Virus record (IMG/VR): IMGVR_UViG_3300025012_000027
Location: 62,001-126,000 of that record
Length of the DNA stretch: 64,000 bases
Strand: one strand, 5' to 3'
The translations under genes were made by a program, and so were the position numbers. Numbering within the stretch: position 1 is the stretch's first letter; every line of letters begins with the position of its first letter. The notes beneath the pieces were generated by a model that saw only the letters and a list, made by a program, of their open reading frames with translations, was not told the origin of the DNA and ran no database searches. Shown here piece by piece: positions 10,570-47,995 of the stretch.

Positions 10570-11427
10570 ATGAGTAAACTAAAAATATCAGAACTATTCT
10601 ATTCGATTCAAGGAGAAGGACGCTATATGGGGGTTCCTAGCGTATTCTTAAGAACCTTTGGTTGCAATTTCAAGTGTGCTGGATTTGGGATGCCTAAAGG
10701 CGAATTGAGTTCGGACGCCGACGAGGTAGCGCATACTCATACCGCGATTGAAGCGTTTCAAACGTATAACGATTTGCCGTTAGTGAAAACCGGTTGCGAT
10801 TCATTTGCATCTTGGCATCCTGCATTCAAAGATCTTTCCCCTATGCTGACTGTGGATGCTATCGTTGATAGAGCCGTCGATCTACTACCACATAAAGAAT
10901 GGCGAGACGAGCATCTTGTTATCACAGGTGGCGAACCTTTGTTGGGGTGGCAGCGGTCTTACCCAGAACTTCTAGCACATCCTAAAATGCGTTCTTTGAA
11001 GGAACTCACATTCGAGACTAATGGCACTCAGCCGTTGAATGGTTTTTTCAAAACCGTGTTATACAGTTGGACAGAAGCCCGTACATATGACTCACTGACG
11101 TTTTCAGTTAGTCCAAAGTTAAGTTGCTCTGGAGAACCTCGTAGTGTAGCAATCAATCCCGAAGTGGTGGTTGATTATGAATTGTATGGCTACACTTACT
11201 TGAAGTTTGTAGTCGCAACTGAAGATGATATAGCAGAAGCGCTTGAAGTGACTGATATTTATCGAAAAGCTGGGTTCAAAGGCCCTGTTTATTTGATGCC
11301 AGTTGGTGGCGTGGAATCCGTATACACGCTAAATAACAGAACTGTTGCCCAGGCAGCAATCAAACATGGGCTTAGGTATAGCGATAGGCTACAAGTTCCT
11401 TTATTCAAGAATGCCTGGGCAACATGA
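10570..11427 (+). CDS. queE: 7-carboxy-7-deazaguanine synthase (radical SAM)
   Basis: ELFYSIQGEG, FLRTFGCNFKC...CDS, VITGGEPLL, FETNGT, SVSPKL, RYSDRLQ. Confidence 0.95.
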   Translation: MSKLKISELFYSIQGEGRYMGVPSVFLRTFGCNFKCAGFGMPKGELSSDADEVAHTHTAIEAFQTYNDLPLVKTGCDSFASWHPAFKDLSPMLTVDAIVDRAVDLLPHKEWRDEHLVITGGEPLLGWQRSYPELLAHPKMRSLKELTFETNGTQPLNGFFKTVLYSWTEARTYDSLTFSVSPKLSCSGEPRSVAINPEVVVDYELYGYTYLKFVVATEDDIAEALEVTDIYRKAGFKGPVYLMPVGGVESVYTLNNRTVAQAAIKHGLRYSDRLQVPLFKNAWAT

Positions 11428-11618
11428 TGAAAACTCGTGACGAAATTATCACGGACATGTGTTATGCTTGGCGACATGACTATGGCTTGGATAAATGGCC
11501 TGACGAGTTTAGTTTTAGGTCTGGTATGACCCCGGCTGAGAGAACTATCCTTTGGAACCAGATGGCTCGCCTATTTGATGATAATATATCCCCTTTTATG
11601 GAGTTTAATCAAGAATGA
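11424..11618 (+). CDS. Hypothetical protein
   Basis: ATGA-coupled on both sides. Confidence 0.55.
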   Translation: MMKTRDEIITDMCYAWRHDYGLDKWPDEFSFRSGMTPAERTILWNQMARLFDDNISPFMEFNQE

Positions 11619-12115
11619 ATCAACCAGTATCGTATAAGTATACATCAACTAAAGAATACATCGACGCATTCCCATGTGCGTATCGACAATGGCGAGCAGA
11701 CAGTCATTGCAATTCGATCCACGGATACAGTTTTTCCATGAAATTTTACTTTGGGACCAATGATCTCGACGTGCGAAATTGGGCCGCTGATTATGGTGGG
11801 TTGTCAGACCTTAAGAAAATTCTGGAGAGTCAGTTCGATCATACGTTGCTAGTGAGTTCAGATGATCCCGAGTTGGAAACTTACAAACTTCTTCAGGAAA
11901 AGAAGATGGCAAAGCTCACAATTCTACCTAAACTTGGGTGCGAAGCTCTCGCGGATATGCTGTATAAATACGTCAATGGCGTTTACATTCCAGATTTGTG
12001 GGGTCCTGGAGAATCCAACCGACTTTGGTGTCATCGAGTCGATGTGCGAGAAACTCGGAGCAACATGGCATTTCGAGAAGGCCATCGCGAATGGAACGAA
12101 GATCTGTTCGCGTAA
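11615..12115 (+). CDS. queD: 6-carboxy-5,6,7,8-tetrahydropterin synthase
   Basis: HCNSIHGY, DYGGL, FDHTLL, GCE, VRET. Confidence 0.92.
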   Translation: MNQPVSYKYTSTKEYIDAFPCAYRQWRADSHCNSIHGYSFSMKFYFGTNDLDVRNWAADYGGLSDLKKILESQFDHTLLVSSDDPELETYKLLQEKKMAKLTILPKLGCEALADMLYKYVNGVYIPDLWGPGESNRLWCHRVDVRETRSNMAFREGHREWNEDLFA

Positions 12116-12142
12116 ATATACATTCAGACAATAAAGGAACAT

Positions 12143-12457
12143 ATGAATACTAGACTATTAACCCCGCCAGAATACTGTCCGGATGCTCTAGCAACGGACG
12201 TTGGTTGGATCAACCCAAAGAATGGTGAGATCTTAGTGATCGTAAAGGATTTGCGGAATCGTCTCACATTACAGGCAGCCGAACTCGCAAAGGCGTTGGC
12301 GACAATGGAAGCCGTTCCAGAACTTGAGCCAACCACGGTTGATGATGTTGAAGTCGTCAATCAGCCCGAGACCTCATCTAGTGATGCAGTAGAAACCACC
12401 AACAAACCAGGGCGTCGCGGGCGTCCTCGTAAAATGACTTCAAAGGAGACAATTTAA
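12143..12457 (+). CDS. Hypothetical protein with C-terminal AT-hook-like RRGRPRK
   Basis: AAGGA RBS and TAAATA at 12113; GWINPKNGEILV motif. Confidence 0.6.
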   Translation: MNTRLLTPPEYCPDALATDVGWINPKNGEILVIVKDLRNRLTLQAAELAKALATMEAVPELEPTTVDDVEVVNQPETSSSDAVETTNKPGRRGRPRKMTSKETI

Positions 12458-13137
12458 TGAATTATGGTAAGTGTGACCCAGAATTGGGTAAGCGAGTTCG
12501 AGCGTATTTGATGTTGCAGGGGGTCGAGTCTCCAATCGACTATTCTGTGTATGACAGTACGACCGCTGCATCTAAAATTGAGGTGGTAGAACATCACATG
12601 AAAGCTGCTCTTGAAATCATGGGGTTCGACCTCACAAACGACTCTGTTCAAAACACCCCCAAGCGAATCGCGAAGATGTGGGTATCCGAGATCATGAGTG
12701 GCCTCGACTACAACAACTTTCCAAAGATTATGACGTTTGAGAACAAGTTCAAAGCATCTGGGATGGTTGTTGAGCGTGATGTTAAGTCAATGAGCCTGTG
12801 CAGCCATCACCTAGTTACTATTGACGGCGTTGCTACTGTTGCATACATTCCTAAAGAGCGGGTTATTGGTCTTAGTAAGATCAATCGTGTAGTTGACTAT
12901 TTTTCCAGACGCCCTCAAGAAGCCGAGCGTTTGACGTTGCAGATCTTCCATGCTCTTGAGTATTTGTTGGGAACTGAAGATATCGCCGTGTTCTTGACAG
13001 GCACGCACTTCTGCGTTCGTTCACGTGGCGTGCAGGATATCAATTCAAGCACATCAACCGTTAAGTTGGGTGGCGGATTCTTGAACGATCCAATGCTGCG
13101 CAAAGAATTCTACGACGTGGTGCATTCAAAGGCGTAA
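12457..13137 (+). CDS. folE: GTP cyclohydrolase I
   Basis: TPKRIAKM, SLCSHHL, IGLSKINR, RRPQEAERLT, HFCVRSRGV. Confidence 0.97.
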   Translation: MNYGKCDPELGKRVRAYLMLQGVESPIDYSVYDSTTAASKIEVVEHHMKAALEIMGFDLTNDSVQNTPKRIAKMWVSEIMSGLDYNNFPKIMTFENKFKASGMVVERDVKSMSLCSHHLVTIDGVATVAYIPKERVIGLSKINRVVDYFSRRPQEAERLTLQIFHALEYLLGTEDIAVFLTGTHFCVRSRGVQDINSSTSTVKLGGGFLNDPMLRKEFYDVVHSKA

Positions 13138-13149
13138 TTAAGCCACCTT

Positions 13150-13175
13150 GATCGGCAGAAATGCCGATCTTTTTT
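13150..13175 (+). terminator. Rho-independent terminator after folE
   Basis: GATCGGCA-GAAA-TGCCGATC followed by T6. Confidence 0.85.
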
Positions 13176-13186
13176 GACTATTCATA

Positions 13187-14515
13187 ATGAAAACTTTCAA
13201 TAAGCGTATTGGCTTCATCATCTCGGCTCAGCATCTTATTCCTCACGGCGGCATCGGACAATTCGCCAAGGGGTTGATTGAGATGCTAGACGAGTATCAA
13301 ATAGATATCATCCTTGATAAGGCTCCAGCATCATCTGAGTTCGTTGAATTATTGGCCGGTAAAGACAACGTTAAGCTAATATACCCCCCACAGCCGCTTT
13401 CGAGCCAAAAACATACTAAGGTACATGCCTTCAGCGAAACGTTGAATCTAGAGCGGATCATTAACTTTCGCGATAGTTTGATGCTTGCTCTGCAGACGCA
13501 GATCTACGATACTATCATTATCAACACGCCTGAAGCACTATTTTCTACATATGCTCTAGGCATTCAAAAGTTCGTTCAAATCGTATTCTATACGCATAAT
13601 GAGAATCTAGTGTTCAAAGATGCTTCATTCGCGGGGGTGTTCAATGACAGCTATGACGAGATCATAGGACAGAGTATGCGATCTGATGGGATCACCGTGG
13701 GAACTCAGACACCCAGAAACCTCGATGAGTTGGTAGGCATCAAAAGTAAGGCATGGTTACCTATGCCCATCCCTGAAAGGGATCTACTCACTCCAAGCAT
13801 TATCGAAAAATCTGGGGTGCTGTTCATCGGTCGATGGGAAGAACGAAAGAACCCCAAAGAGTTCCTGCGGCTGATTGAAGAAACTGGATTGCCTGCAAAG
13901 GTTATGACGAACGAAAACGGTGCTAAGAGTTTTGAAGCAGCTCTTAGTAAGTTGGGCGTGCCGTATGAGATCAAAGCATCTATCATCGGTAAAGAAAAGG
14001 TAGATTTCATTAAGTCAGCGAAAGTGTTCTATATGCCATCAAAGAGCGAGAGCTATGGGTTTGCTCTGATGGAAGCAATTGGACACACGCATTCAATCGT
14101 TCTCGAAGAATATCCGTGGCATAAGAACTTTGACCCGACGTTTATTAACGTATCGGCCAAGAAAGATGTTGCATCTTTGACAAAACGATTGTATAATACG
14201 CCGGTACATACGGCGAATATTGATTATGTACGATCACTAGACGATCAGTGTAAGTCTATCTGGGTTGACTTCATTGAGTCGTTTAACCCAAAGCAATCAA
14301 CCTCAAATTCGGCTAACATTACCAAACATGATGAAGTGCTATATGCAGACTTCATATCATCGTTGGGTCGGTTTGCTAGTATCGAGGATGTAATTTCTGT
14401 GCTAAGCAATCGGCATAAATTCACAGTGTCACATTCCAAAGAAGGAACCTTTCTCTCAAAGAGTGGAAAGACGATTCAAAAGTCTGAAGGCATTTCATTC
14501 GACGACATATTCTAA
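13187..14515 (+). CDS. GT-B glycosyltransferase (GT4-like)
   Basis: HGGIG, VLFIGRWEERKNP, MPSKSESYGFALMEA (E-x7-E). Confidence 0.88.
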   Translation: MKTFNKRIGFIISAQHLIPHGGIGQFAKGLIEMLDEYQIDIILDKAPASSEFVELLAGKDNVKLIYPPQPLSSQKHTKVHAFSETLNLERIINFRDSLMLALQTQIYDTIIINTPEALFSTYALGIQKFVQIVFYTHNENLVFKDASFAGVFNDSYDEIIGQSMRSDGITVGTQTPRNLDELVGIKSKAWLPMPIPERDLLTPSIIEKSGVLFIGRWEERKNPKEFLRLIEETGLPAKVMTNENGAKSFEAALSKLGVPYEIKASIIGKEKVDFIKSAKVFYMPSKSESYGFALMEAIGHTHSIVLEEYPWHKNFDPTFINVSAKKDVASLTKRLYNTPVHTANIDYVRSLDDQCKSIWVDFIESFNPKQSTSNSANITKHDEVLYADFISSLGRFASIEDVISVLSNRHKFTVSHSKEGTFLSKSGKTIQKSEGISFDDIF

Positions 14516-15763
14516 ATGATAAAAGATATACATTACATCGCGTCCGGAATGTCCTACACGAGAATCAATTCTCCGAGGAACTACGAGAACCCAGAAAATT
14601 TGCAGTTCATTAATGATACTTTCAGAAAGATCAGTGATAGTGCAACCAGACATGACTTCGGCATACTGTTCAACGCATTCACTGAATCTGCTTTTGGCGA
14701 ACGGTTCTCGAAGTATAATGGGCACAAATTTACACACGCCGACTCAGGTGGCTTGCAAGTAATTACTCAAGGTAAGACGATCACGCCGGCATTGAAAGAC
14801 GCCGTATATGCTGTTCAAGCTAAGTGGTCTGATCTGGGGATGTGCTTCGATGAGATTCCAATCGGAATGACTGGAACAACTTCGGGTAGAAATGACGTAA
14901 CGAATCGTTGGTATAAGTCAGACGATCTGGAACACTATGCTAGGCTGACTGGTCGAAACATTGCTAGACAGATTGAAGTTTACCATAAACTAGATTCAAA
15001 GTGTAAGCCAATTCTCATTGCTCAAGGAAACTGTTATGACAGTTACATGCGCTGGGTAGATTATATTATGGATGAGATTCCTGCATCCGACCGTCAATAT
15101 GTCGGCGGTGTTGCTATGGGAGCTGCTGCTCTTGGCACAGGCACCCTCGAAGACATCGAGCGAGCATTTATCTTCTCACAATTGCAGATCGACGTCAAGC
15201 ATCTACACGTGCTGGGAGTTGGTTCTGTAAAACGACTATATCCGTATTTGGTGTTCCAAGATTCGGGTCTGTATAAAGACATCACATTATCATATGACAG
15301 CACTAGCCATACTTCTGGAGGCGAACTTGCAAACTATTACACCGAAGATTTCAAACGTCTTTCGTTTACTCGTCAGTATTCGAGACACTATGAAAAGATT
15401 TTTAATGAGATTGCTGGGTTCATTGACGTTTCTGATTTGACGCCTCGAGACTTTCATGAGATCATGAACAGTGGATACACAAAGTATGTCGAGGAATTGA
15501 ATAAAAAAGACTTTGACTTTTTGCGTTGTCGTTTAGGTATTATTTTCAGAATGATCCATAATTTTATCAACCACGTTGAACACGTTATGGCAAGTAAAGA
15601 GAACATGATTGAAGATGCGATGCAGCATAACCTGCATGGTCAGATTAAGTTCTTGTATGGAGTGAAAGATAAGAATGACTTCGATGCTTGGAACTCGCAT
15701 TTCAAACGTACCGTTAAGTCAAATCGTGTGCAATCTGGACAATCTTTAGAATTGGAGTTTTAA
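14516..15763 (+). CDS. dpdA: DNA 7-deazaguanine transglycosylase (TGT fold, DpdA2-like)
   Basis: ADSGGLQ, CFDEIP, IAQG, HLHVLGVG, SYDSTSH; no C-terminal CxCxxC; clustered with queE/queD/folE. Confidence 0.85.
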   Translation: MIKDIHYIASGMSYTRINSPRNYENPENLQFINDTFRKISDSATRHDFGILFNAFTESAFGERFSKYNGHKFTHADSGGLQVITQGKTITPALKDAVYAVQAKWSDLGMCFDEIPIGMTGTTSGRNDVTNRWYKSDDLEHYARLTGRNIARQIEVYHKLDSKCKPILIAQGNCYDSYMRWVDYIMDEIPASDRQYVGGVAMGAAALGTGTLEDIERAFIFSQLQIDVKHLHVLGVGSVKRLYPYLVFQDSGLYKDITLSYDSTSHTSGGELANYYTEDFKRLSFTRQYSRHYEKIFNEIAGFIDVSDLTPRDFHEIMNSGYTKYVEELNKKDFDFLRCRLGIIFRMIHNFINHVEHVMASKENMIEDAMQHNLHGQIKFLYGVKDKNDFDAWNSHFKRTVKSNRVQSGQSLELEF

Positions 15764-15764
15764 T

Positions 15765-16124
15765 ATGGGAATCAAAACATACATCAAAGTTAGAACTGAG
15801 TTTGAAGGGTTTCATAGCTACCCAGGAGCCGGTAGCATAAGCCCAGCTATCAAATTCCTGGAAGATCGGCATCGCCACATGTTCAAAGTCGAGGTTAAGA
15901 TCTCTGTGACACATGATGACCGAGAGTTAGAGTTTTTCTTGACCAAGTGGGCGCTCGAAGATTTCCTGAATAGAAGAGAACTCAATAACAAGAGTTGCGA
16001 GATGATTGGGCGTGATATCTTGAACGATCATCTGCTGATAGCGTATGGCGGTGATCGATATTATGAAGTCATTGTGTCTGAAGACGGCGAGTCTGATGGT
16101 ATTGTAGAATATACTCCGGAATAA
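15765..16124 (+). CDS. dpdL: QueD-like T-fold protein, DpdL type (proposed CDG decarboxylase)
   Basis: FEGFH, LEDRHRHMF (LxxxHRHxF signature as recalled for DpdL), DRELEF, SCEM, VSEDGE. Confidence 0.7.
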   Translation: MGIKTYIKVRTEFEGFHSYPGAGSISPAIKFLEDRHRHMFKVEVKISVTHDDRELEFFLTKWALEDFLNRRELNNKSCEMIGRDILNDHLLIAYGGDRYYEVIVSEDGESDGIVEYTPE

Positions 16125-16128
16125 TACT

Positions 16129-17220
16129 ATGTCAAAACTTATCATTGTCCCCATTGAACCGATCGAATCTCGGTATACCTCTCAGTGGTATAAGTTCCTG
16201 CCAGGTTTTATTAAAGAAAATACGTCGTTTGATTCAATCGTCCATCTAGAGATTGACAAAGAAGTTCCTGAAAACACTTCTGGTGGGTTCTTTAACTTCA
16301 ATTTCACGTGCGAGTATAAGGCCGCGCAATTCATCTCATTATCTGAGATGGTTAAACGTGGTGAGATACAAGACGGTGATGTGATCTTCTATACAGATTA
16401 CTGGAACCCAACGGTTCATATGACTCGATACATTCTCGATCTAAATGGAATTCGTGCAAAGATCGTTGGATTTGCTCACGCAGGAGACTGGGACCCAGCT
16501 GATATTCTACATCAAAAGCTAGTTAATAAACACTGGTCTTGGACTACTGAGATGTCATTGCATCAGGCATATGATCAGATTTATTTCTCGACGTACTTTG
16601 CTCGACAGTTGTATGCTAATAATCTTGGGGCAGATCTAGTATATGCTGCAGGTGCAGACCTCATCGTAACAGGGTTCCCGATGGAATATTATGATGAAGT
16701 TCTCCCATCATACTGGGATCTTGAATCACCTGTTAATAAAGAAGACTTGATAGTATTCCCTCATCGAATCTCAGATGAGAAAAACTATAAACTATTCAAG
16801 ATACTTGAGCGTAGGTTGCCGCAATACAAATTCGTTGTGGCGATGGAAGTGTGTAAAACGAAAGATGCGTATCACGATCTATTGTACCGAAGCAAAGTAG
16901 CATTCTCGGCTGCATTGCAAGAAACAGGCGGCATAAGTATGGGCATCGAGTCTCTACGAGCAGGCTGTATGACTATAGTTCCTGATCGACTATCATATGC
17001 TGAAATCTTTGACCAGTGGGATTTGAAGTTTGCCGGTGATGTTGCGGATTACGTCGTCACGGAAGATAATGATCCATGTGTCGATATCCTAGTCGATACT
17101 ATAGTGAAGGCATTCGAAACCTGGAACATCGAGGTTATCAAGAAACAACATGATTTGAATTACGCAAAGTATTTCACTGGCACAATTCTTTATGCTGCAT
17201 TGGATACGTTCAATGAATAA
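16129..17220 (+). CDS. GT-B glycosyltransferase, GTDC1/QTMAN-like
   Basis: HAGDWDP, IVFPHRISDEK, KDAYHDLL, SAALQETGGISMGIE, VPDRLSYAEIF. Confidence 0.8.
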   Translation: MSKLIIVPIEPIESRYTSQWYKFLPGFIKENTSFDSIVHLEIDKEVPENTSGGFFNFNFTCEYKAAQFISLSEMVKRGEIQDGDVIFYTDYWNPTVHMTRYILDLNGIRAKIVGFAHAGDWDPADILHQKLVNKHWSWTTEMSLHQAYDQIYFSTYFARQLYANNLGADLVYAAGADLIVTGFPMEYYDEVLPSYWDLESPVNKEDLIVFPHRISDEKNYKLFKILERRLPQYKFVVAMEVCKTKDAYHDLLYRSKVAFSAALQETGGISMGIESLRAGCMTIVPDRLSYAEIFDQWDLKFAGDVADYVVTEDNDPCVDILVDTIVKAFETWNIEVIKKQHDLNYAKYFTGTILYAALDTFNE

Positions 17221-17728
17221 TATAATGCTGGACATTGAAACTTTAGGCACGTCTTCTAATAGCATCATCGTATCTATAGCCGCAGTGGCGTTCAACTTCA
17301 AAGATGATATTACCGAAGATTTGTTGCTAAACTGTTCTCCAAAGAGTAGCAAAGCCCTTGGTATGGTGTCTGATGCTGATACAGTACAATGGTGGGCTGA
17401 GCAACCCGCAGAAGTTCGCAATGCATGGATGGTAGATCAACGACCTATCACAGACGCGCTAACCACATTATCCGAGTTTGCCGGTACTCAATGGAAGAAT
17501 GTTGTTTGGTGGTCTAATGGGATGAACTTCGATTTCCCAGTATTGGAATGGAGTTATAAGGCTGCAACCATTCCAGTTCCATGGAAGTATTGGAATCTGC
17601 GAGATGTTAGAACGGTGTATTCTGTGTTTGATTTAAACTTTCGAGAATTCCCGAGGGTCGGTAAGTATCACAATGCTATTGATGACTGCAAAACTCAAAT
17701 CGCTGCCCTGAAATCCGTACTAATCTAG
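17213..17728 (+). CDS. dexA: DEDDh 3'-5' exonuclease (DexA/Rv2179c-like)
   Basis: MLDIETLG, WSNGMNFD, RDVRT, HNAIDDC; ATG 17213 preferred. Confidence 0.85.
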   Translation: MNNIMLDIETLGTSSNSIIVSIAAVAFNFKDDITEDLLLNCSPKSSKALGMVSDADTVQWWAEQPAEVRNAWMVDQRPITDALTTLSEFAGTQWKNVVWWSNGMNFDFPVLEWSYKAATIPVPWKYWNLRDVRTVYSVFDLNFREFPRVGKYHNAIDDCKTQIAALKSVLI

Positions 17729-17769: not shown

Positions 17770-18129
17770 ATGTCCAATAATGTATCTGAAGAATCTTGGT
17801 TTAAACACCAATGGAGACCCACGACTGCTTGGGTCTATCTTGCCATCTGTCTTTTCGACTTCCTGATAGCACCCATTCTAACCGCTGTATATTTTGCAAA
17901 ATATGGTGGTGACTATGTTGCTTGGAAGCCGATATCATTGTCTGAAGGTGGATTGTTCCACATGGCAATGGGCGCAATCTTAGGTATCACTAGCTGGACT
18001 CGTGGTCAAGAGCGAATCTCATCAGCTAGATATCGATCAGAACATTCGTATAGGTCAGACGACCGTGCCCCATATCGTTCTACCACGGAGACTGATTTCA
18101 GGGATAACCTGATCAATGATGACAGATGA
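17770..18129 (+). CDS. Putative holin (GTA 3TM-holin-like)
   Basis: WRP motif, hydrophobic helices, GAILG.TSWTRGQE; ATGA-coupled to endolysin. Confidence 0.65.
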   Translation: MSNNVSEESWFKHQWRPTTAWVYLAICLFDFLIAPILTAVYFAKYGGDYVAWKPISLSEGGLFHMAMGAILGITSWTRGQERISSARYRSEHSYRSDDRAPYRSTTETDFRDNLINDDR

Positions 18130-18740
18130 TCACAGTTGAACAACTACTAGAGATTTTTCCTAGAATAGAAGATGCTGACTTTTGGGTCGAGGCAATGGAG
18201 TATAATCTACCAGCTCATGATATCATAGAAGGGCCGCGTCTTTGGATGTTTTTAGCACAGTGCGGGCATGAGTCTGCTGGGTTCACAGTTTTTCAAGAAA
18301 ACTTGAACTACTCAAGCACCGGTCTGTTAAAAACTTTTCCGAAGTATTTTAACACAAAACTTGCAGCTCAATGCGCGAGACAGCCAGAACTTATAGCAAA
18401 TATTGTGTATGCTAACCGAATGGGTAATGGTCCATCAGAAAGTGGCGATGGTTATAGGTTTAGAGGTAGAGGACCAATCCAAATCACGGGTCGCAGAAAC
18501 TACACTGCTATGTCACACGATCTATGGGGTGATGATCGAGCCGTTGAAGAACCTGAGATGATTCTTTCGCCCGACAATGCAATTGCTAGTGCTGGATGGT
18601 ATTGGGACATCGCAAAACTAAATCAATATTGTGATCGAGAAGACGTCGTTACTGTTACCCGACGCATCAATGGTGGTACTAATGGATTGGCCGATCGCAA
18701 ACATCTTTACGCACAAATCAAAGAAATGTTGAACCAGTAG
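18126..18740 (+). CDS. GH19 chitinase-like endolysin
   Basis: FLAQCGHES, ENLNYS, YANRMGNG, FRGRGPIQITG, RRINGGTNGL. Confidence 0.93.
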   Translation: MITVEQLLEIFPRIEDADFWVEAMEYNLPAHDIIEGPRLWMFLAQCGHESAGFTVFQENLNYSSTGLLKTFPKYFNTKLAAQCARQPELIANIVYANRMGNGPSESGDGYRFRGRGPIQITGRRNYTAMSHDLWGDDRAVEEPEMILSPDNAIASAGWYWDIAKLNQYCDREDVVTVTRRINGGTNGLADRKHLYAQIKEMLNQ

Positions 18741-19786: not shown

Positions 19787-20956
19787 AAGGATGTAAATGG
19801 CAGATGAATTTAAAGTATTGAGTGACCGCCATGCGCATTACTGTTGAGTGATTTGCAGTTGTCGTAGTGAAATCTTTTAAAATTCCATGTGGTGCCGATT
19901 CGATTACAGTGCGGACATTCAAACCTATTAGGTACCCTCCCTAACACATATCCTGCAGGAACACTAGATGATTGTGGTAATCTTAAGTTGTCGACGCCGT
20001 TATTATACCATCTAGTGCTAGTAACCGCATGCTTATATAGGTGATTGTTCTTCCAGAATTCAGCGGTGGTTATAGTAATCCGTTTATCGGTGGTCAACTC
20101 GATGACTGGTATGCGACCGGAGCATCCCTTATTGCCTTTACCAGTATGGTCATATAAGTCTTTATTAGCCGCATACTCTTCGCTAGTCAGTCTTACTTTT
20201 TCAGTCGTCCCTTTAGTATGAACGGTTAGTTTTCCGGATGGAAGTTTTAGCCCAGAATTCCAAGATGGGGTCCCTTCCGCGAAATGTTTGTATAACCCTC
20301 GATTTGCACGATATTCGGCTACAGTTACCCAGACAGTTTCATCAGTTGCTACTAATTTACACGACAGATGCGCTGGATGAGTAGCACAATGTCGGGTTCG
20401 ACTGTCAGAAATCTTCTTGCGCGTTTCTGGGCTGACATATTTTCCGGTATGCCTTTTCGATACTTGTTTGGCATGTGCTATACACGCCTCGCCGTATAAC
20501 AAAGCCGCGTTTATCATATTGTCGTCGTCAAACTTAGATATGTTTTGGGTCGAACACATCAACAGCAAAGGTGATGCGTTTTGCGCAACTCGCCATGATT
20601 TCCATAATAAGAAATGTGCGACGAGGTGATCTGAGTGTGTTAGAATAACCCGATTCCACGGAAATCTTGCAAAATTTGAATATTGGCCAAATGCCCATCT
20701 AGGAAGTATGTGGTGAGCTGCGGTTTTAAATTTTATGCGTTTTGGCAGACGCGCAGATTCTATGAATGTAAAATATTCAACTAGATCTATCGTAGGATAT
20801 TCTTGACGAAACGCGTCAACATAAGTATAATTACTGAACATTGTTATTTCCTTAGTACCGTTTTAACGTGTTTAGAGTCCTTGGGTGCGTAATACCGCGA
20901 AGGACACTTTTATTTAAAGGGTGTAAATGGCAGATGAATTTAAAGTATTGAGTGAC
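19787..20956. repeat. 40-bp direct repeat (19787-19826 / 20917-20956) of the topoisomerase RBS and first 10 codons, bracketing the HNH gene
   Basis: aagg(a/g)tgtaaATGgcagatgaatttaaagtattgagtgac, 39/40 identical. Confidence 0.95.
19810..20841 (-). CDS. Free-standing HNH homing endonuclease
   Basis: HHILPR...NRVILTHSDHLVAHFLLWK; NUMOD3-like SPETRKKIS; three internal repeats; WYNNG; C-terminal CPHC finger. Confidence 0.85.
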   Translation of the reverse strand: MFSNYTYVDAFRQEYPTIDLVEYFTFIESARLPKRIKFKTAAHHILPRWAFGQYSNFARFPWNRVILTHSDHLVAHFLLWKSWRVAQNASPLLLMCSTQNISKFDDDNMINAALLYGEACIAHAKQVSKRHTGKYVSPETRKKISDSRTRHCATHPAHLSCKLVATDETVWVTVAEYRANRGLYKHFAEGTPSWNSGLKLPSGKLTVHTKGTTEKVRLTSEEYAANKDLYDHTGKGNKGCSGRIPVIELTTDKRITITTAEFWKNNHLYKHAVTSTRWYNNGVDNLRLPQSSSVPAGYVLGRVPNRFECPHCNRIGTTWNFKRFHYDNCKSLNSNAHGGHSIL

Positions 20957-22732
20957 AGGGACCACATAATGTTGCGACCGGGCATGTATGCGGGATCGGT
21001 AGTTGAAGAGCCCATCTCAGGTATCATTGATTACAAATATCAATCGAAGAAGATTGTCCCAGCACTTATCAAGTGCATCGAAGAGATTCTGCAGAATTCT
21101 ATTGACGAGCATATTCGCACTGATGGAAAGTTTGCTACTGAAATATCGTTGACGATCGACCAAACGATCAATGGAACAGAAATTACAATCGCGGATAACG
21201 GCCGCGGAATTCCTGTTGAAAAGATCGGCGATTCTTATCGACCAGTATTAGCATGGACTGAGTTGAGAGCAGGGTCTAACTTCGATGACTCTGCTGGTCG
21301 AGTGACCGCTGGCACAAACGGAATGGGGGCAGCTATCACCAACGTTCTTTCAAAACAGTTCATCGGAACAAGTTGCGACGGGAAGAAACGTATCGTAGTA
21401 TCGTCATATGACAATATGTCTACTGTCGACTTTGAGATATCAAAGACCAACGCTAAAGGTGTTACTGTACAGTTTATCCCCGATCTAGAACGATTTGGTT
21501 TGAGTGGGTTTACGTTAGACCACGAAGACGTCATCAATGACCGAATTCGTAATCTAGCTATCCAGTATCCTAAGATAACGTTCAGCGTCAACCGTGAGAA
21601 GATCAAGTTTAAAAACATCAAACAAGTCGCAAAACTGTTTCATGAAGATGCTATATCGGTCGAAGATGGGTTGGCTGCTATCGTTATTGCTCCTTCGGGT
21701 GACGACGAAGAGTTTCGTTGTTTGAGTTACGTTAACGGCATATACATCAAGAACGGCGGGGCGCACATCGATTTTGTGGTCGATCGTATCATTGTAATTC
21801 TTCGAGAGTATGTGAAGAAGAAGCATAAGATCGACGTGCTACCGAATCAAATCCGCCAGCACTTGTTGATTGCTAGTTGGATCAATGGATTCCCGAATTT
21901 GAAGTTTGACTCACAGACAAAGGAACGCATTACTAACTCGCAGTCAGAAGTGAATGTGGTATTGGGCAGTATCGACTTCGATCGAGTGGCAAAACAGATT
22001 CTAGGAACTCCGAGTATAATTGATCCAATGATCGCTGCTATTCTTTTCAAGAAAGAAATGGCTGAAAAATTAGCCCTGGCAAAGAAGCAGAAATCTGCGG
22101 CAAAACTTAGAGTCGTCAATCACATCGTAGCAACAGACCCCAATCCAGAAAACAAGATGTTGTTGCTGTGCGAGGGATTGTCTGCAATTGGATCATTGAT
22201 CTCAGTACGAAATCCTAAGACTGTTGGCGGATATCCTCTGCGAGGTAAGCCACTCAACATTTGTGGGATGAAACCAGTAGACATCGTTAAGAACAAGGAG
22301 ATGTTTGAGTTAATGAACATCATTGGTCTTGAGTTTGGTAAACCAAACCCAGAGTTGAACTATGGTAAGATTGCTGTGTTCAGCGACTTAGACATTGACG
22401 GTGCGCACATATTTGGCTTGTTGTTGAACTTTTTCAGTCTTTGGCCATCATTGTTTGCTGAGCGAAGAATATTTCGTATGCTGGCTCCTTTGTACCATTG
22501 TACTAAAGGAAAAGATGTTAAAATCTTTTACACAAAAGAAGAGTTTGATAAAGCAAATCTTAAGGGATATGCTGTAGACTACTTCAAGGGATTGGGTAGC
22601 ATGCCCGAAGATGTGTATCGCGAGTGTGTAAACAATCCTAGATTGATTGAAGTATGTGCGGACGATCTGAATAAACTCGACATGGCATTTGGCGATAGTG
22701 CTGATGCTCGTAAACAATGGCTAATGGCTTGA
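20927..22732 (+). CDS. 39: DNA topoisomerase II large subunit (fused gp39+gp60)
   Basis: RPGMY, EILQNSIDE, DNGRGIP, GTNGMG, FDSQTKE, EGLSA, PLRGK, DLDIDG, YFKGLGS. Confidence 0.97.
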   Translation: MADEFKVLSDRDHIMLRPGMYAGSVVEEPISGIIDYKYQSKKIVPALIKCIEEILQNSIDEHIRTDGKFATEISLTIDQTINGTEITIADNGRGIPVEKIGDSYRPVLAWTELRAGSNFDDSAGRVTAGTNGMGAAITNVLSKQFIGTSCDGKKRIVVSSYDNMSTVDFEISKTNAKGVTVQFIPDLERFGLSGFTLDHEDVINDRIRNLAIQYPKITFSVNREKIKFKNIKQVAKLFHEDAISVEDGLAAIVIAPSGDDEEFRCLSYVNGIYIKNGGAHIDFVVDRIIVILREYVKKKHKIDVLPNQIRQHLLIASWINGFPNLKFDSQTKERITNSQSEVNVVLGSIDFDRVAKQILGTPSIIDPMIAAILFKKEMAEKLALAKKQKSAAKLRVVNHIVATDPNPENKMLLLCEGLSAIGSLISVRNPKTVGGYPLRGKPLNICGMKPVDIVKNKEMFELMNIIGLEFGKPNPELNYGKIAVFSDLDIDGAHIFGLLLNFFSLWPSLFAERRIFRMLAPLYHCTKGKDVKIFYTKEEFDKANLKGYAVDYFKGLGSMPEDVYRECVNNPRLIEVCADDLNKLDMAFGDSADARKQWLMA

Positions 22733-22735
22733 TAC

Positions 22736-24052
22736 ATGAAAATTGAACAACGAACACTAACTGATATCATTGACACCGAGTTTCGTGCATTCTCGATGTA
22801 CACGATCGAGAATCGAGCAATTCCATCTGCAATTGATGGATTGAAGCCTGTTATGCGCAAATTGCTGTATGCAATGATCGTGGAACATAAGGGAAAAAAG
22901 GTTAAGCTCTCTGATTTGGGCGGGATCTCGAAGTACTCATACCATCACGGAGAAACATCTGCTATAGGTGCAGCTATTGGATTATCACAGGCGTGGAGCA
23001 ACAATGCGACACTGTTTGATGGTCACGGGAACTTTGGATCGAGACTTGTTCAAGAATCTGCGGCTCCTCGATACATATATGCTTCGTTGTCTGATAACTA
23101 TAAGAAATACTTCAGGGATACCGAGGTATCACCTGTGGCGTTCGACAAAGAAAACCCAGAACCAGCATTCTATCTCCCAATCATTCCGTGGGTGTTGGTA
23201 AACGGAATCAGTGGTATTGCTGTTGGATTCAAAACAGATATCTTACCTAGACAAATATCAGATCTAGTTGCCGCTACAAAAGCATGTGTAAAAAATCCCG
23301 ATGAATTTTTGAAAGCGGATGCTCCTATTAAGCCATCGTTCCCAGACTTCAAAGGAACGGTCACTCAATTGTCTAGTAATCAGTGGAAAACTTCTGGTAT
23401 CATTAGTTACGTTGGTAAGAACTATTTTTCAATCACCGAAGTACCTATTGGTTATGATCGAGCATCTTATGTAGAGTTGTTGAACTCGATGATCGACAAA
23501 GATCTGATTCGAGATTATGAAGACTGCTGCTCCAAAGCAGGTTTTGGATTCAACGTAAAGGTCAGTTTGAATCAGAAGATGGATGCCGAGAAAGATCTTT
23601 TGAAGTATTTCAAACTTGAACGAACACATACCGAGATTCTAACGACTCTTGGGCATGACGGCAAGTTGAAGATCTTCAATTCAGTTGCAGAGCTAATCTA
23701 CTACTTCGTTAACTATCGATTGACTAAGTTCGGTGATAAGATTCTGTACGACAAAACCAAGTTGTCTGAAGAACTTGATATAATTGAGCACAAGATTAAG
23801 TTCGTGAAAGATGTGATCGACGATAAGATCGACTTTAGGCATACTACGAAAAGTGCATTGCTGTCATGGATTAACAGCAATATATCGACATGTGATTGGG
23901 CTAAGTCATTCATTAACATTCCATTGTATGAATGTACCAGCGATCAAGTAGCAGAATTACAACAATCGTTTGACGATAAAACCGAAAAGATGCAGCAGTT
24001 GAACCTACAAACTCCTAATGGCATGTACCTAGCTGCTCTAAAAGGCGTATAG
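22736..24052 (+). CDS. 52: DNA topoisomerase II medium subunit gp52
   Basis: RAIPSAIDGLKP, YHHGE, GNFGSR, AAPRY (catalytic Tyr), LVNGISGIAVG. Confidence 0.97.
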   Translation: MKIEQRTLTDIIDTEFRAFSMYTIENRAIPSAIDGLKPVMRKLLYAMIVEHKGKKVKLSDLGGISKYSYHHGETSAIGAAIGLSQAWSNNATLFDGHGNFGSRLVQESAAPRYIYASLSDNYKKYFRDTEVSPVAFDKENPEPAFYLPIIPWVLVNGISGIAVGFKTDILPRQISDLVAATKACVKNPDEFLKADAPIKPSFPDFKGTVTQLSSNQWKTSGIISYVGKNYFSITEVPIGYDRASYVELLNSMIDKDLIRDYEDCCSKAGFGFNVKVSLNQKMDAEKDLLKYFKLERTHTEILTTLGHDGKLKIFNSVAELIYYFVNYRLTKFGDKILYDKTKLSEELDIIEHKIKFVKDVIDDKIDFRHTTKSALLSWINSNISTCDWAKSFINIPLYECTSDQVAELQQSFDDKTEKMQQLNLQTPNGMYLAALKGV

Positions 24053-27903: not shown

Positions 27904-28163
27904 CTGAATTTTCAAAAGCACTGCGCAAAGCACGGCCATTGATTGAGTCTGGTGAAGCGCGATTTATGTGTCACGCATTAGGAATTACGGGAGGCGGCAA
28001 TTTCGCCAGTCGGATTTCGAGGCATCTCAAAAAATGCTTAACTTACGAAATTTGGCTTGATAAACACCACCGCGAGGTGTTCCTCAAGATGACCAAAAAC
28101 GACTTCCGTGATGGCCGCCTGCAATGGATCGACCACATGATCAAGATGGAGGAATCGAAATGA
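27900..28163 (+). CDS. Hypothetical protein, GRLQWIDHMI family paralog 1
   Basis: Homologous to 37710 and 37998 ORFs. Confidence 0.7.
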   Translation: MTEFSKALRKARPLIESGEARFMCHALGITGGGNFASRISRHLKKCLTYEIWLDKHHREVFLKMTKNDFRDGRLQWIDHMIKMEESK

Positions 28164-28405
28164 AAAAAGAAGAAGTGCTTGAGATTGCCAGGATGTCTGA
28201 TGCGGGGTTTGGCAGCGACATCGAAAATTGTGACCCTCTATCAGATTGTCTTATTGGGTATGAGGCAATAGCCGCGTTTGCTGGCGAAGTCGAACGTCGA
28301 ACGCTTGAACGTGCTATCACACAGACCATCGGTAAAGGGTTCGTCTCCGAGTATTACTCCTATGATTTTATCGATGCCATCAGAGCATTAAAGGAATCGA
28401 AATGA
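28160..28405 (+). CDS. Hypothetical protein
   Basis: GGAGG RBS, ATGA coupling. Confidence 0.6.
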   Translation: MKKEEVLEIARMSDAGFGSDIENCDPLSDCLIGYEAIAAFAGEVERRTLERAITQTIGKGFVSEYYSYDFIDAIRALKESK

Positions 28406-28581
28406 AATTCAACTTACGGAAATTCAACGATGTTGCTTTTTGTACATTGGAAGAATCCGGGACAATTATTGATTTCGGTGTGCTAGATGTGAATGATGCC
28501 AAGAAGCTACTGCGAGAAATCGAAGATGCTGCTGATGAACTTAAATGGTATCTTGAAAAACAGAACAAGGAACCGAAATGA
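28402..28581 (+). CDS. Hypothetical protein (59 aa, not in track)
   Basis: AAGGA RBS; ATGA-coupled on both sides. Confidence 0.55.
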   Translation: MKFNLRKFNDVAFCTLEESGTIIDFGVLDVNDAKKLLREIEDAADELKWYLEKQNKEPK

Positions 28582-29153
28582 ACACAACACTAAAACAAAT
28601 CCGCGAGAAATCACCATGTATTAGTGGCTGGGGAAATCTACTCGCCCACCTCGGGAAAACGAAAGCAGATGATGAGCCGCTGAGCATCTTAACGATCCTG
28701 GACAGCAATGGATTGAATGATGCCCTTTGGTGCCTACGCGCGGTGAAAGGCCGCGATAAGGAAATCCGCCTATACGCCGTTTGGTGCGCTCGCCAAGTGC
28801 AACACCTGATGACAGACCAGCTTAGCTTGGATGCACTAGATGTAGCAGAGAGGTTCGCAAAGGGCGAAGCCACAGATGATGAATTGGCTGCTGCGTGGGC
28901 TGCTGCGCGGACTGCTGCGTGGACTGCTGCGGAGGCTGCTGCGCGGACTGCTGCGGAGGCTGCTGCATGGACTGCTGCTGCATGGACTGCTGCGGAGGCT
29001 GCTGCATGGACTGCTGCTGCATGGACTGCTGCTGCGCGGACTGCTGCGGAGGCTGCTGCATGGACTGCTGCGGAGGCTGCTGCGAAGGTTGCGCAAGAAA
29101 AACGACTACGTGAAGTATGTATTGAATGCGAAAACAAATGGGAATCAAAATGA
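28578..29153 (+). CDS. Phage protein with Ala-rich (AAAW/AAAE) repeats
   Basis: SPCISGW...LGKTKADDEPL...ILDSNGLNDALW followed by repeats. Confidence 0.75.
   Translation: MNTTLKQIREKSPCISGWGNLLAHLGKTKADDEPLSILTILDSNGLNDALWCLRAVKGRDKEIRLYAVWCARQVQHLMTDQLSLDALDVAERFAKGEATDDELAAAWAAARTAAWTAAEAAARTAAEAAAWTAAAWTAAEAAAWTAAAWTAAARTAAEAAAWTAAEAAAKVAQEKRLREVCIECENKWESK
28887..29084 (+). repeat. Coding tandem array of 12/15-bp units ((g/a)ctgctgcN-NNN)
   Basis: gctgctgcgtgg, gctgctgcgcgg, actgctgcggag, gctgctgcatgg repeated over ~200 bp. Confidence 0.9.
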
Positions 29154-29575
29154 CAGCATTCCCAACCCACTATCGCATTAAAGACGTACTTGACGAATCA
29201 GGTGTCCACATCATCATGGAAAAGTGGCACCCACTGAGCGAGACGCCCGAAGGCTACTGGGTGTTGCTTGACGGTGGACCTAGCTGGCACGGTATTGACA
29301 AAAAATACCAGCGTAAATGTGGCGCCCTGAAGTGGGTGAGCAAGACCTCCGTCAGGCGCTACTGCTACCCCACCATGACCGAGGCGATGGCGTCATTCAA
29401 GCGACGCAAGGAAGTGCAGGTGAGCAAGCTGGCCATCCAACTGGAGCAGGCGCAACTGGCGCTGGCCAAGTTTGATGACTACAAGGACGCAACACCAAAC
29501 AGTTTCCCTTCGCGCTACGAGGGAATTTGCCTTGGCGAGATTGAGGCGGCAGCAAATTTAATTTGGGATTATTGA
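29150..29575 (+). CDS. Hypothetical protein
   Basis: ETPEGYWV...RRYCYPT..EAMASF..RK; ATGA coupling. Confidence 0.65.
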   Translation: MTAFPTHYRIKDVLDESGVHIIMEKWHPLSETPEGYWVLLDGGPSWHGIDKKYQRKCGALKWVSKTSVRRYCYPTMTEAMASFKRRKEVQVSKLAIQLEQAQLALAKFDDYKDATPNSFPSRYEGICLGEIEAAANLIWDY

Positions 29576-29576
29576 C

Positions 29577-46480: not shown

Positions 46481-46483
46481 TGG

Positions 46484-47950: not shown

Positions 47951-47995
47951 TCCGCAGAGCCCTTAAATAAAAGAGAATACTTCAGGGACCATACT

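Follow-up and report, generated by a model that had tools for sequence, protein, structure and literature searches.

The 64,000-nucleotide stretch of DNA analyzed here, referred to as the window (positions 62,001 to 126,000 of IMG/VR virus record IMGVR_UViG_3300025012_000027), encodes a QTMAN-like, GT4-type glycosyltransferase, GT-B (16129..17220, + strand; an ATG-initiated ORF of 363 amino acids), within a cluster of deazaguanine genes. We propose that GT-B is an optional last tailoring step of the DpdA3/DpdL module and glycosylates 7-deazaguanine, most likely once the base is in DNA. We lean modestly towards this reading, with a probability of roughly 0.55, and its substrate, donor sugar and linkage are all inferred.

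FolE, QueD, QueE, DpdA3, DpdL and GT-B are encoded in one co-directional block (10570-17220). The QueE-like radical SAM enzyme (7-carboxy-7-deazaguanine synthase; 10570..11427, +; Radical_SAM, E 3.4e-6) clusters with genes annotated as QueE or CDG synthase in PA5oct, ACP17, X1 and BCSR5, and is followed by the CPH4 synthase QueD (11615..12115, +; PF01242 PTPS, E 3.7e-15) and the GTP cyclohydrolase I FolE (12457..13137, +; PF01227, E 6.7e-53). The DpdA3-type DNA guanine transglycosylase (14516..15763, +; 415 aa; phrog_10773, E 2.3e-95) clusters with ACP17 ASD50403 and has an invariant or near-invariant D76-S77-G78-G79-x-Q81 stretch, which we take to be the TGT-type motif, as well as D261. Next comes a DpdL-like QueD paralog of 119 aa, a proposed 7-carboxy-7-deazaguanine decarboxylase (15765..16124, +; phrog_17812, E 1.5e-20), whose stop codon ends 4 nt upstream of the GT-B start. 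This protein carries LxxxHRHxF, conserved in 29 homologs and given as the DpdL signature by Cui et al. 2023 (PMC10516641). The criterion that a DpdA-family transglycosylase be encoded together with deazaguanine synthesis genes is met. QueC is absent from the complete phage genome, QueA, QueG and QueF were not seen in the cluster, no PRTase was found in the window's phage, and there are no tRNA genes in the window. At its 3' end, GT-B is overlapped by 29 nt by the ORF of a Rv2179c-like 3'-5' exonuclease (17192..17728, +; PF16473, E 6.6e-38), which has homologs in only 11-13 related loci and whose membership in the module is uncertain.

Two ORFs of the cluster look like glycosyltransferases, and GT-B lies second. 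GT-A, ahead of it (13187..14515, +; 442 aa), is a generic GT4 enzyme (Pfam Glycos_transf_1, E 3.5e-5); among the related loci, just 6 have a homolog. A GRWEERKNP stretch prompted its consideration as a second QTMAN-like enzyme; this was rejected, as the QTMAN HMM gives GT-A a score of just 10.4 bits and the generic GT4 profile fits better.

The preliminary description, made from sequence alone, had assigned two motif strings to the ORF at 16129-17220, and this held: IVFPHRISDEK corresponds to residues 207-217 and TKDAYHDLLY...VPDRLSYAEIF to residues 244-294. An alignment of 47 family members shows the invariant positions P211, R213, E217, K218, K245, S260, Q264, E265, T266, G268, E274 and P285, and conservation of at least 90% at H212, L288, S289, Y290 and E292. 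The two strings are thus features of the family rather than chance resemblances. With R213, K218, E265 and E274 invariant in all 47 sequences, the donor-binding Arg/Lys pair and the EX7E glutamates of GT4-like retaining enzymes are present as required. The AF2 model (pLDDT 94.9, pTM 0.92) shows two Rossmann-like halves, and Foldseek with this model gave a probability of 1.00 to MshA, BshA, PimB-type mannosyltransferases and others, so that the expected two-Rossmann fold is supported by both methods. GT-B of the window matches Pfam Glycos_transf_1 only at E 0.023, below the cut-off, while 38 of the 47 family members match it at E≤10 (best 1.8e-8); neither PHROGs nor NCBIfam yielded a match. Among solved structures, sequence searching turned up AmGGT alone (PDB 8xsg; E 8.3e-5, C-terminal domain), and 9ir0, the GT-B enzyme of phage HY126, ranks sixth in the PDB by Foldseek. 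With a pI of 4.83 and a net charge of -20, GT-B is strongly acidic; the median pI of the family is 5.5. As part of the main reading we propose that GT-B is an active retaining-type GT-B (GT4-like) glycosyltransferase; the fold and the conserved catalytic-type residues are shown, and activity is inferred without assay data.

Several comparisons place the phage family closer to the QTMAN/DUF3524 family than to generic GT4 enzymes. The QTMAN/DUF3524 family has the Pfam architecture PF12038 (QTMAN_N) + PF00534 (Glycos_transf_1) and comprises the animal tRNA-queuosine alpha-mannosyltransferase GTDC1 as well as bacterial DUF3524 proteins. We scanned 552 sampled bacterial genomes with the GT-B family profile, 96 of which have a QTMAN_N (PF12038) protein. 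In 96/96 of these the best cellular match was the QTMAN_N protein (E 1e-15 to 2e-7), the QTMAN_N ORF being matched in 77/77 Bacteroidota and 19/19 Pseudomonadota genomes that bear one. Leaving aside true GT-B homologs, only four other matches reached 1e-6. Local profile scores were 38-61 bits for QTMAN_N ORFs versus at most 35 bits for generic GT4s, and the reciprocal QTMAN HMM gave a median of 37 bits for the phage family versus 20 for generic GT4. Alignment of the phage and QTMAN profiles with hhalign (probability 99.3%, E 1.3e-20) extends over 280 columns and spans both domains, and per-sequence hhalign scores place the phage family beside QTMAN/DUF3524. The likeness of the two families is far beyond chance. 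In maximum-likelihood trees, the split between {GT-B + QTMAN} and {generic} received support of 99/96 at full length and 93/88 for the C-domain with motifs removed. In Swiss-Prot, Drosophila QTMAN was ranked second by Foldseek with the GT-B model.

The kinship is also visible at the level of residues. We compared 16 phage, 13 QTMAN_N and 20 generic GT4 proteins and found two motifs common to the phage family and QTMAN_N. The first, H/Q-R....(E/D)K, takes the form (W/F)x(H/Q)R....(D/E)K; the residue before its arginine is H in the phage family and H or Q in bacterial QTMAN_N, compared to G or S in the generic GT4 controls, as anticipated by the earlier statement that PHR replaces the usual GR. 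We take the lysine of this motif ((E/D)K) to be the counterpart, by position, of human QTMAN K296, a proposed catalytic residue (10.64898/2026.06.28.735034). The second, P(D/N)RLxYxE, follows the EX7E glutamates and takes the place of the GG loop of generic GT4s. The C-terminal signature of the QTMAN/GTDC1 family is met by the phage family.

Other tests do not favor QTMAN over generic GT4. Profile-profile hhalign gave a score of 155 (280 columns) for the QTMAN profile and 164 (201 columns) for the pooled generic GT4 profile, with 131 and 139, respectively, for the C-domain only. TM-scores were 0.74-0.76 for QTMAN-type models and up to 0.81 for generic GT4 (Foldseek against Swiss-Prot, PDB, AFDB clusters and ESM Atlas). 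Neither measure separates the two. PF12038 has no match at E≤1 in the GT-B protein, and none at E≤10 in any of the 47 family members or in the whole phage genome, while bacterial QTMAN_N members score 1e-39 to 1e-66 with this model. The N-domains alone align only weakly, if suggestively, by hhalign (E 0.002 over 128 columns). Since N-domain similarity is weak and QTMAN_N is unmatched, the shared ancestry may have more to do with the half that binds the donor than with the acceptor half. It should also be noted that the two joined stems of the tree are long, so that long-branch attraction is possible (the tree tool warned of this), and that the generic GT4 controls were drawn from Bacteroidota only. 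A search for eukaryotic GTDC1 with a bacterial QTMAN_N query returned only bacterial proteins among its best 120 rows, so the residue comparison does not include animal GTDC1. A sequence search of the PDB returned no structure from the QTMAN family, and no queuosine genes lie near the one bacterial QTMAN_N gene whose context was inspected.

The preliminary description had proposed that GT-B resembles the animal queuosine mannosyltransferase QTMAN (GTDC1), to be refuted if, in profile or tree analysis, generic GT4 enzymes were at least as close to it as GTDC1. It is not refuted, given the genome HMM scans, the reciprocal HMM, per-sequence hhalign, the two motifs and the two trees; the resemblance is supported as that of a sister family and not as membership. 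Since PF12038 does not match the phage protein, we describe the phage family as a viral sister group of QTMAN/DUF3524, neither an ortholog nor a nested member. Specific kinship to QTMAN_N proteins is shown, and the QTMAN sequences compared are bacterial. Members of both families adopt the GT-B fold, are about 360-400 aa long and share about 15-23% identity. Each has a link to the 7-deazaguanine modification of nucleic acids, but the phage family is viral and lies in a DNA-modification operon.

The evidence that GT-B acts on deazaguanine comes from its gene neighborhood. A DpdL homolog adjoins the GT gene in 80 of 82 loci examined by tblastn; across 121 GT-B loci, DpdA3 is present in 107, DpdL in 95, FolE in 71 and QueE in 64. 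Gene order within the module is shuffled between lineages. The trio of GT, DpdA3 and DpdL is also found in Xanthomonas phage X1, Burkholderia phage BCSR5 and cyanophage BUCT-ZZ01 (23-26% identity), and T4-like, jumbo, cyanophage and prophage-like contexts all preserve the linkage at 23-40% identity. All isolate-phage records with the GT also have DpdL (18/18); ten isolate-phage DpdL records (phiST and others) are without the GT. GT is thus tightly linked to DpdA3 and DpdL in unrelated phages. A nucleotide-sugar epimerase/dehydratase lies within the module in 41 loci, and related loci include a xanthine/guanine-type PRTase in 63 cases and a HinT-like HIT protein adjoining the GT in 33. That GT-B acts on deazaguanine remains an inference, strongly backed by this conserved neighborhood and without an assay. 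Of the earlier suggestion that a phage relative of QTMAN acts on deazaguanine in DNA, it is the deazaguanine part that is supported; whether the acceptor is DNA, free base or nucleotide is not shown. Two further tblastn matches, in PhiXhv and Ep032, were rejected as family members, having only 64-69% query coverage and a GlmS/deacetylase context.

In the proposed pathway, FolE, QueD and QueE would produce 7-carboxy-7-deazaguanine; preQ0 would not be made, as there is no QueC. DpdL would then yield 7-deazaguanine, which DpdA3 would exchange for guanine in phage DNA. GT-B would use an NDP-sugar to glycosylate the deazaguanine, most likely already in DNA, and GT-A may add a second sugar in the window's phage. 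Two analogies favor a DNA-borne acceptor: QTMAN modifies Q that is part of tRNA (10.64898/2026.06.28.735034), and phage DNA glycosyltransferases such as those of T4 act on DNA after replication (PMC13216743). GDP-mannose as the donor is suggested only by analogy with QTMAN, which uses it to alpha-mannosylate Q34 of tRNA-Asp. In the absence of QueC, and with no QueA, QueG or QueF seen in the cluster, the phage cannot make the cyclopentenediol that QTMAN mannosylates, and the acceptor atom must therefore differ from that of QTMAN. As plain 7-deazaguanine offers neither a hydroxyl nor a side chain for attachment, the sugar would have to be joined through an N- or C-glycosidic bond; the exocyclic N2 or C7 are possible attachment atoms, both inferred. 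Further points weigh against this reading. Such a linkage would be out of the ordinary for a nucleic-acid-modifying GT4-type enzyme, the strong acidity of GT-B is unexpected for a DNA-binding enzyme, and there are no biochemical or mass-spectrometric data for any phage carrying the GT gene.

The module resembles the phiST dDG pathway (PMC10516641), with which it has in common FolE, QueD, QueE, DpdA3 and DpdL with LxxxHRHxF, and the lack of QueC. DpdL and DpdA3 belong to phages with fully replaced DNA guanine, and phiST DNA carries plain dDG; no glycosyl step is mentioned in the main text of that study (PMC10516641). While phiST-type phages lack the GT, the modules here and in PA5oct, ACP17, X1, BCSR5 and BUCT-ZZ01 have this extra glycosyltransferase. 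PA5oct has a restriction-resistant modified G at G-containing sites, of unknown structure (PMC12191111). The T4 alpha/beta-GT (5hmC) and the enzyme of HY126, a phage whose DNA carries arabinosylated 5-hydroxycytosine (PMC13326640), follow the same proposed logic of placing a sugar on a modified DNA base to escape host nucleases. However, these enzymes use pyrimidine hydroxyls whereas the base here would be a 7-deazapurine without a hydroxyl, and the kinship is limited to the GT-B fold. A chemical precedent for a sugar on a deazaguanine-derived base without a side-chain hydroxyl is HuiG, a GT4-type enzyme (PF13439) that glycosylates a free 7-deazapurine base in huimycin biosynthesis (10.64898/2026.04.15.718813), with the sugar attached, as we take it, at exocyclic N2. 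HuiG differs from the phage GT in using a free base and in belonging to actinomycete secondary metabolism. AmGGT, a GT4 glucosyltransferase of Actinobacillus minor, is UDP-Glc dependent and elongates glucosides (PMC12159676); it has RR/EE where the phage family has HR/EK.

A possible alternative is that the GT acts before insertion, on free 7-deazaguanine or CDG base or nucleotide, which DpdA3, or a polymerase via the PRTase route of relatives, then inserts. The free-base substrate of HuiG, the acidity of GT-B, the small glycosides used by AmGGT, its closest solved sequence relative, and the PRTase and HIT proteins of related loci, which point to base- or nucleotide-level chemistry, are consistent with this. 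Against it, QTMAN and the T4 glucosyltransferases modify polymers, Q in tRNA and replicated DNA, respectively; the DpdA pocket would need to accept a far bulkier base; and the window's phage lacks the PRTase. We think it very unlikely that GT-B is instead a true functional analogue of QTMAN that adds a sugar to tRNA of the host or the phage, at a 7-deazaguanine derivative (Q or one of its precursors), and not to DNA. The nearest cellular relatives are QTMAN_N proteins, and the Foldseek rank of Drosophila QTMAN fits this view, but QueC is missing, QueA, QueG and QueF were not seen in the cluster, QTMAN_N is unmatched, the window has no tRNA genes, and the GT is tied to the DpdL and DpdA3 of guanine-replaced-DNA phages.

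Nor is there much to recommend the idea that GT-B merely happens to lie in the cluster and is an ordinary GT4 enzyme serving another modified base or a glycan, whether of the cell surface or elsewhere. The weak Pfam match and the profile-profile and TM-score results leave room for it, and polysaccharide glycosyltransferases are frequent in jumbo phages (PMC7824862). However, the linkage to DpdL and DpdA3 persists despite shuffled gene order and 23-40% identity, and the GT never occurs without DpdL in isolate phages, the PhiXhv and Ep032 matches falling outside the family. An equally poor prospect is that the GT is an accessory to the DpdL step or to DpdA3 insertion, for example by transient CDG activation or as a scaffold, leaving no sugar in the final DNA. 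The near-constant adjacency of GT and DpdL supports this, as does the failure of DpdL and DpdA3 from ACP17, a GT carrier, to give dDG in E. coli, for which the authors suggest that other enzymes may be needed (PMC10516641). However, the phiST pair failed in the same assay (PMC10516641), yet phiST carries dDG without such a GT; the GT is therefore not generally required. Glycosylation of deazaguanine as a late, optional step remains our preferred reading.

Both 7-deazaguanine DNA modifications and sugar-decorated pyrimidines are established phage counter-defense chemistries. The GT-B family predicts a base that combines them, a sugar-decorated deazaguanine, for which we found no report in DNA in the literature searched and which can be checked in cultured phages. 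Among the cultured carriers are PA5oct-like phages, which are discussed for phage therapy. A bolder reading, which in our judgment falls just short of being the better bet, is that sugar-bearing 7-deazaguanine is present in the DNA of many phages, among them PA5oct-like Pseudomonas jumbo phages, Acidovorax phage ACP17, a T4-like cyanophage and abundant aquatic phages, and is made by an enzyme family with which the animal tRNA mannosyl-queuosine synthase has a specific ancestor in common. To our knowledge no genome contains a glycosylated purine-type base, and this would be the first. If so, deazaguanine glycosylation in nucleic acids would be one ancient enzymatic theme, serving eukaryotic translation and phage counter-defense; it would bear on restriction and CRISPR evasion and on type IV and glycosylase defenses that sense modified G, and would matter for the sequencing and enzymology of such DNA. 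The family also provides evolutionary context for QTMAN/GTDC1 and brings into view the bacterial DUF3524 proteins, which are widespread and of unknown function.

The GT-B family is large and almost purely viral, with 702 clusters at E≤1e-30 and members on at least 597 IMG/VR contigs, so the modification, if made, would be common in nature. All 150 matches inspected from a profile search of 1.84 billion representatives were GT-B family members, and the search does not give the rank of QTMAN. Megablast of the whole cluster against phage records gave no match. The source record is a metagenomic virus, and the locus occurs only in DNA contig sets, with no RNA run among them, from groundwater and sediment.

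The target gene, which encodes the QTMAN-like glycosyltransferase GT-B (16129..17220, plus strand), is the final enzyme gene in a closely packed, co-directional block. Upstream of it on the same strand lie genes for a QueE-like radical SAM protein (10570-11427), QueD (11615-12115), FolE (12457-13137), a first glycosyltransferase of 442 aa, GT-A (13187-14515), a DpdA3-type protein of 415 aa (14516-15763; phrog_10773) and a DpdL-like protein of 119 aa (15765-16124; phrog_17812). The window covers positions 62001-126000 of its source record (216,115 bp, rated 100% complete in IMG/VR), which is that of a T4-like phage, with UvsX, RNA ligase 1, a tail-tube cap, a DnaB-like helicase and a split topoisomerase II, and the phage occurs in groundwater and sediment metagenomes.

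The 119-aa protein bears L-x3-H-R-H-x-F, exactly the signature given for DpdL by Cui et al. 2023 (PMC10516641), and across 29 homologs its conservation is 90% or more. DpdL is described there as a QueD paralog and proposed 7-carboxy-7-deazaguanine (CDG) decarboxylase in phages that have FolE, QueD, QueE and DpdA and lack QueC. In the alignment of homologs of the 415-aa protein, D-S-G-G-x-Q is invariant or near-invariant and a later Asp is invariant; we take these to be TGT-type active-site features, as known from tRNA-guanine transglycosylases. The same protein clusters with the one adjoining the glycosyltransferase in Acidovorax phage ACP17, which is among the phages whose DpdA and DpdL were tested by Cui et al. 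(PMC10516641). QueC was not found in a search of the whole phage genome. The DpdL signature, the TGT-type protein clustering with ACP17 and the lack of QueC together assign the block to the DpdA3/DpdL type. Cellulophaga phage phiST has a gene set of this type, and its dG is completely replaced by 2'-deoxy-7-deazaguanosine (dDG) (PMC10516641).

GT-B homologs are found consistently beside this pathway. In tblastn searches of 82 loci with the window's proteins (80 IMG/VR contigs, PA5oct and ACP17), DpdL adjoins the glycosyltransferase in 80/82, with FolE in 63/82 and QueE in 58/82. Unbiased clustering of all ORFs from 121 loci, many of them truncated by contig ends, recovered DpdA3 in 107, DpdL in 95, FolE in 71 and QueE in 64. 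Gene order varies by lineage: DpdA3-DpdL-GT in the window, DpdA3-GT-DpdL in PA5oct, and DpdL-GT-DpdA3 or GT-DpdL-DpdA3 in others. The trio is also present, at 23-26% identity, in Xanthomonas phage X1, Burkholderia phage BCSR5 and the T4-like cyanophage BUCT-ZZ01. At sites that contain G, PA5oct DNA resists restriction, and defence systems recognizing modified G attack this DNA; the chemistry of its modification is unreported (PMC12191111).

Every one of the 18 isolate-phage records that encode a full-length GT-B homolog also has DpdL, whereas ten DpdL records lack the glycosyltransferase (phiST and relatives, two Vibrio phages, and Rhizobium, Aeromonas and Chryseobacterium phages). Gene co-occurrence thus makes the glycosyltransferase a supplement to the DpdL pathway, on which it depends, and not vice versa. 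phiST makes plain dDG in the absence of this enzyme, whose simplest role is therefore a further step on deazaguanine. We lean towards GT-B being an optional last step that glycosylates 7-deazaguanine, probably in DNA (probability roughly 0.55).

In the proposed pathway, FolE, QueD and QueE would produce CDG, DpdL is proposed to convert it to 7-deazaguanine, and DpdA3 would swap this base for G in DNA; the part of this route that leads to dDG is based on Cui et al. (PMC10516641). GT-B would then transfer a sugar from an NDP-sugar, a step that is inferred, and GT-A may add a second sugar in this phage. The attachment atom remains open because 7-deazaguanine has no hydroxyl. The GT4-type enzyme HuiG of huimycin biosynthesis provides a precedent for glycosylating a deazaguanine-type base (10.64898/2026.04.15.718813). 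HuiG attaches its sugar at the exocyclic N2; other possible sites are the CDG carboxylate and C7 of the electron-rich pyrrole ring. GDP-mannose is a conceivable donor, suggested only by analogy with QTMAN.

The modules of related loci contain a xanthine/guanine-type phosphoribosyltransferase (63/121), a nucleotide-sugar epimerase/dehydratase (41/121) and a HinT-like HIT protein (33/121); examples of these genes are at L041:11900-12442, L033:12665-13036 and L081:5232-5981. They hint at deazaguanine chemistry on nucleotides and at a sugar donor of the module's own. Neither the epimerase/dehydratase nor the phosphoribosyltransferase was found in the window's phage. In most marine relatives, DpdA3 and DpdL are separated or flanked by two conserved families without a Pfam match, f4 (173 aa, 66 loci) and f6 (243 aa, phrog_12062, 63 loci); the window has neither.

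GT-B might instead act before insertion into DNA. This possibility stays alive because the protein is acidic (pI 4.83), the HuiG precedent involves a free base, and relatives carry the phosphoribosyltransferase. Action on tRNA, the substrate of animal QTMAN, is unlikely because the phage cannot build queuosine. The preliminary description had proposed a phage relative of QTMAN (GTDC1) acting on deazaguanine in DNA; the gene neighbourhood backs action on deazaguanine, with the glycosylation step itself, and DNA as its acceptor, inferred.

Kinship to QTMAN was assessed with bacterial proteins carrying Pfam PF12038 (QTMAN_N) as stand-ins; no animal GTDC1 sequence was in the comparison. Of 301 sampled Bacteroidota, 77 encode PF12038 proteins, about 370-400 aa long, and many of these genomes have two paralogs. 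The profile of 47 GT-B family members matched in all 77 of these genomes (E 1e-15 to 2e-8), in the same ORF and just downstream of the QTMAN_N match wherever coordinates were compared. Only 5 of the 224 Bacteroidota without QTMAN_N reached 1e-6 (G001, G037, G300, G235 and G008): G001 contains true GT-B homologs (E-149), three of the other four, taken as controls, behaved as generic GT4, and the G300 match is a 147-aa fragment. In Pseudomonadota, with the true homolog in G003 set aside, matches at E<=1e-6 fell in exactly the 19 of 251 sampled genomes that have QTMAN_N, with agreeing coordinates. Local rescoring gave 38-61 bits for QTMAN_N proteins versus 20-35 for each genome's best generic GT4. 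Reciprocally, when the 47 phage proteins were scored with a model of 25 bacterial QTMAN_N proteins, their median was 37 bits, versus 20 for the generic set. Aligning the two profiles with hhalign gave a probability of 99.3% (E 1.3e-20) over 280 columns that begin at the first strand and extend past the EX7E region.

Two motifs are common to the phage family and QTMAN_N and absent from the generic GT4 set. F-P-H-R-x-S-x-E-K corresponds to W-N-(H/Q)-R-W-E-Y-D-K, where generic enzymes have (G/S)-R...K, and V-P-(D/N)-R-L-S-Y-x-E corresponds to L-P-N-R-L-x-Y-P-E, where they have a G-G loop. Maximum-likelihood trees (LG+C20) separated GT-B plus QTMAN_N from 19 generic GT4 proteins at full length (support 99/96) and for the C-domain with both motifs cut out (93/88). 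A Foldseek search of Swiss-Prot (550,129 entries) placed Drosophila tRNA-queuosine alpha-mannosyltransferase at rank 2 (E 1.3e-9). As to the bacterial stand-ins, one QTMAN_N gene adjoins an Exo_endo_phos gene, a context without a clue to role, and bacteria are not known to contain glycosylated queuosine.

Not all comparisons agree. PF12038 matches neither GT-B, nor any of its 47 relatives, nor the phage genome, and the N-domains of the two families alone align weakly (hhalign E 0.002). In hhalign, the GT-B family profile matches a pool of generic GT4 proteins no less strongly than it matches QTMAN, though the match to the pool covers the C-terminal half only. TM-scores of QTMAN_N clusters to GT-B (0.74-0.76) fall among those of generic GT4 clusters (up to 0.81), not above them, and in the full-length tree the two long stems that join may attract each other. 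We read the phage proteins as a separate, viral sister family of QTMAN/DUF3524 and not as orthologs. It is possible that the shared C-terminal motifs reflect a common donor instead of a common acceptor. The claim in the preliminary description that GT-B is closer to QTMAN than to generic GT4 enzymes thus held in HMM scans, the reciprocal HMM, motifs and trees; pooled-profile hhalign and TM-scores did not discriminate between the two. Both strings it quoted are present in the 363-aa, ATG-initiated ORF, and its observation that P-H-R replaces the usual GT4 G-R also held, generic enzymes having (G/S)-R.

Curated libraries barely recognize GT-B: Pfam Glycos_transf_1 falls below the cut-off (E 0.023), and there is no PHROGs or NCBIfam match. 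One search gave 97 family clusters at 90% identity, and a library of 1.84 billion proteins gave 702 representative clusters at E<=1e-30 and 3,799 at E<=0.001. The family occurs on at least 597 IMG/VR contigs and on 38 bacterial or archaeal assembly contigs, mainly Alphaproteobacteria; its Atlas clusters are 95-100% viral. All 47 members share the Arg/Lys pair (R213, K218) and the EX7E glutamates (E265, E274) typical of GT4-type enzymes; in the N-domain, E10, R15, Y16, W20, H117, D122 and D125 are likewise invariant. The confident AlphaFold2 model (pLDDT 94.9, pTM 0.92) folds into two Rossmann-like halves, the layout of GT-B enzymes, and its Foldseek matches are GT4 enzymes throughout.

In the full-text literature searched, which excluded subscription journals so that priority is not ruled out, neither a glycosyltransferase in deazaguanine DNA-modification clusters nor a glycosylated deazaguanine in DNA has been reported. 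The word "glycosyl" is absent from the main text of the DpdA3/DpdL paper (PMC10516641), and a jumbo-phage survey attributes phage glycosyltransferases to surface polysaccharides (PMC7824862). What would be new, if the inferred glycosylation step is correct, is the combination of phage DNA sugar decoration with deazaguanine replacement, each kind being already known, together with a specific evolutionary tie of the phage family to the tRNA mannosyl-queuosine enzyme.

GT-A had also been considered as QTMAN-like on the basis of a GRWEERKNP stretch. Its score of 10 bits with the QTMAN HMM rules this out; it is a generic GT4 with a homolog in only 6 related loci.

GT-B and DpdA3, with or without DpdL, also occur together in the Roseobacter group, Magnetospirillum and Devosia, on alphaproteobacterial contigs of 0.4-1 Mb and one 3.9-Mb chromosome (L089, L094, L103, L110). 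The 8-kb flanks of these four loci showed no FolE or QueE; the loci may be prophages or a Dpd-like system belonging to the cell.

An Rv2179c-like 3'-5' exoribonuclease gene (17192-17728, plus strand) overlaps the last 29 nt of the GT-B gene; its homologs lie near the glycosyltransferase in only 11-13 related loci. Directly downstream of the block, a three-TM holin (GTA_holin_3TM) and a GH19-type lysin are encoded at 17770-18740 (plus strand). A lone minus-strand ORF amid plus-strand genes (19810-20841, 343 aa, no Pfam match) immediately precedes the split topoisomerase II genes (20927-22732 and 22736-24052); with its His-rich N-terminus and repeated T..EY..N..LY.H units it has a homing endonuclease-like appearance. 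G+C content is raised in 28001-30000 (0.515) and 46001-48000 (0.531) relative to the window average of about 0.43.
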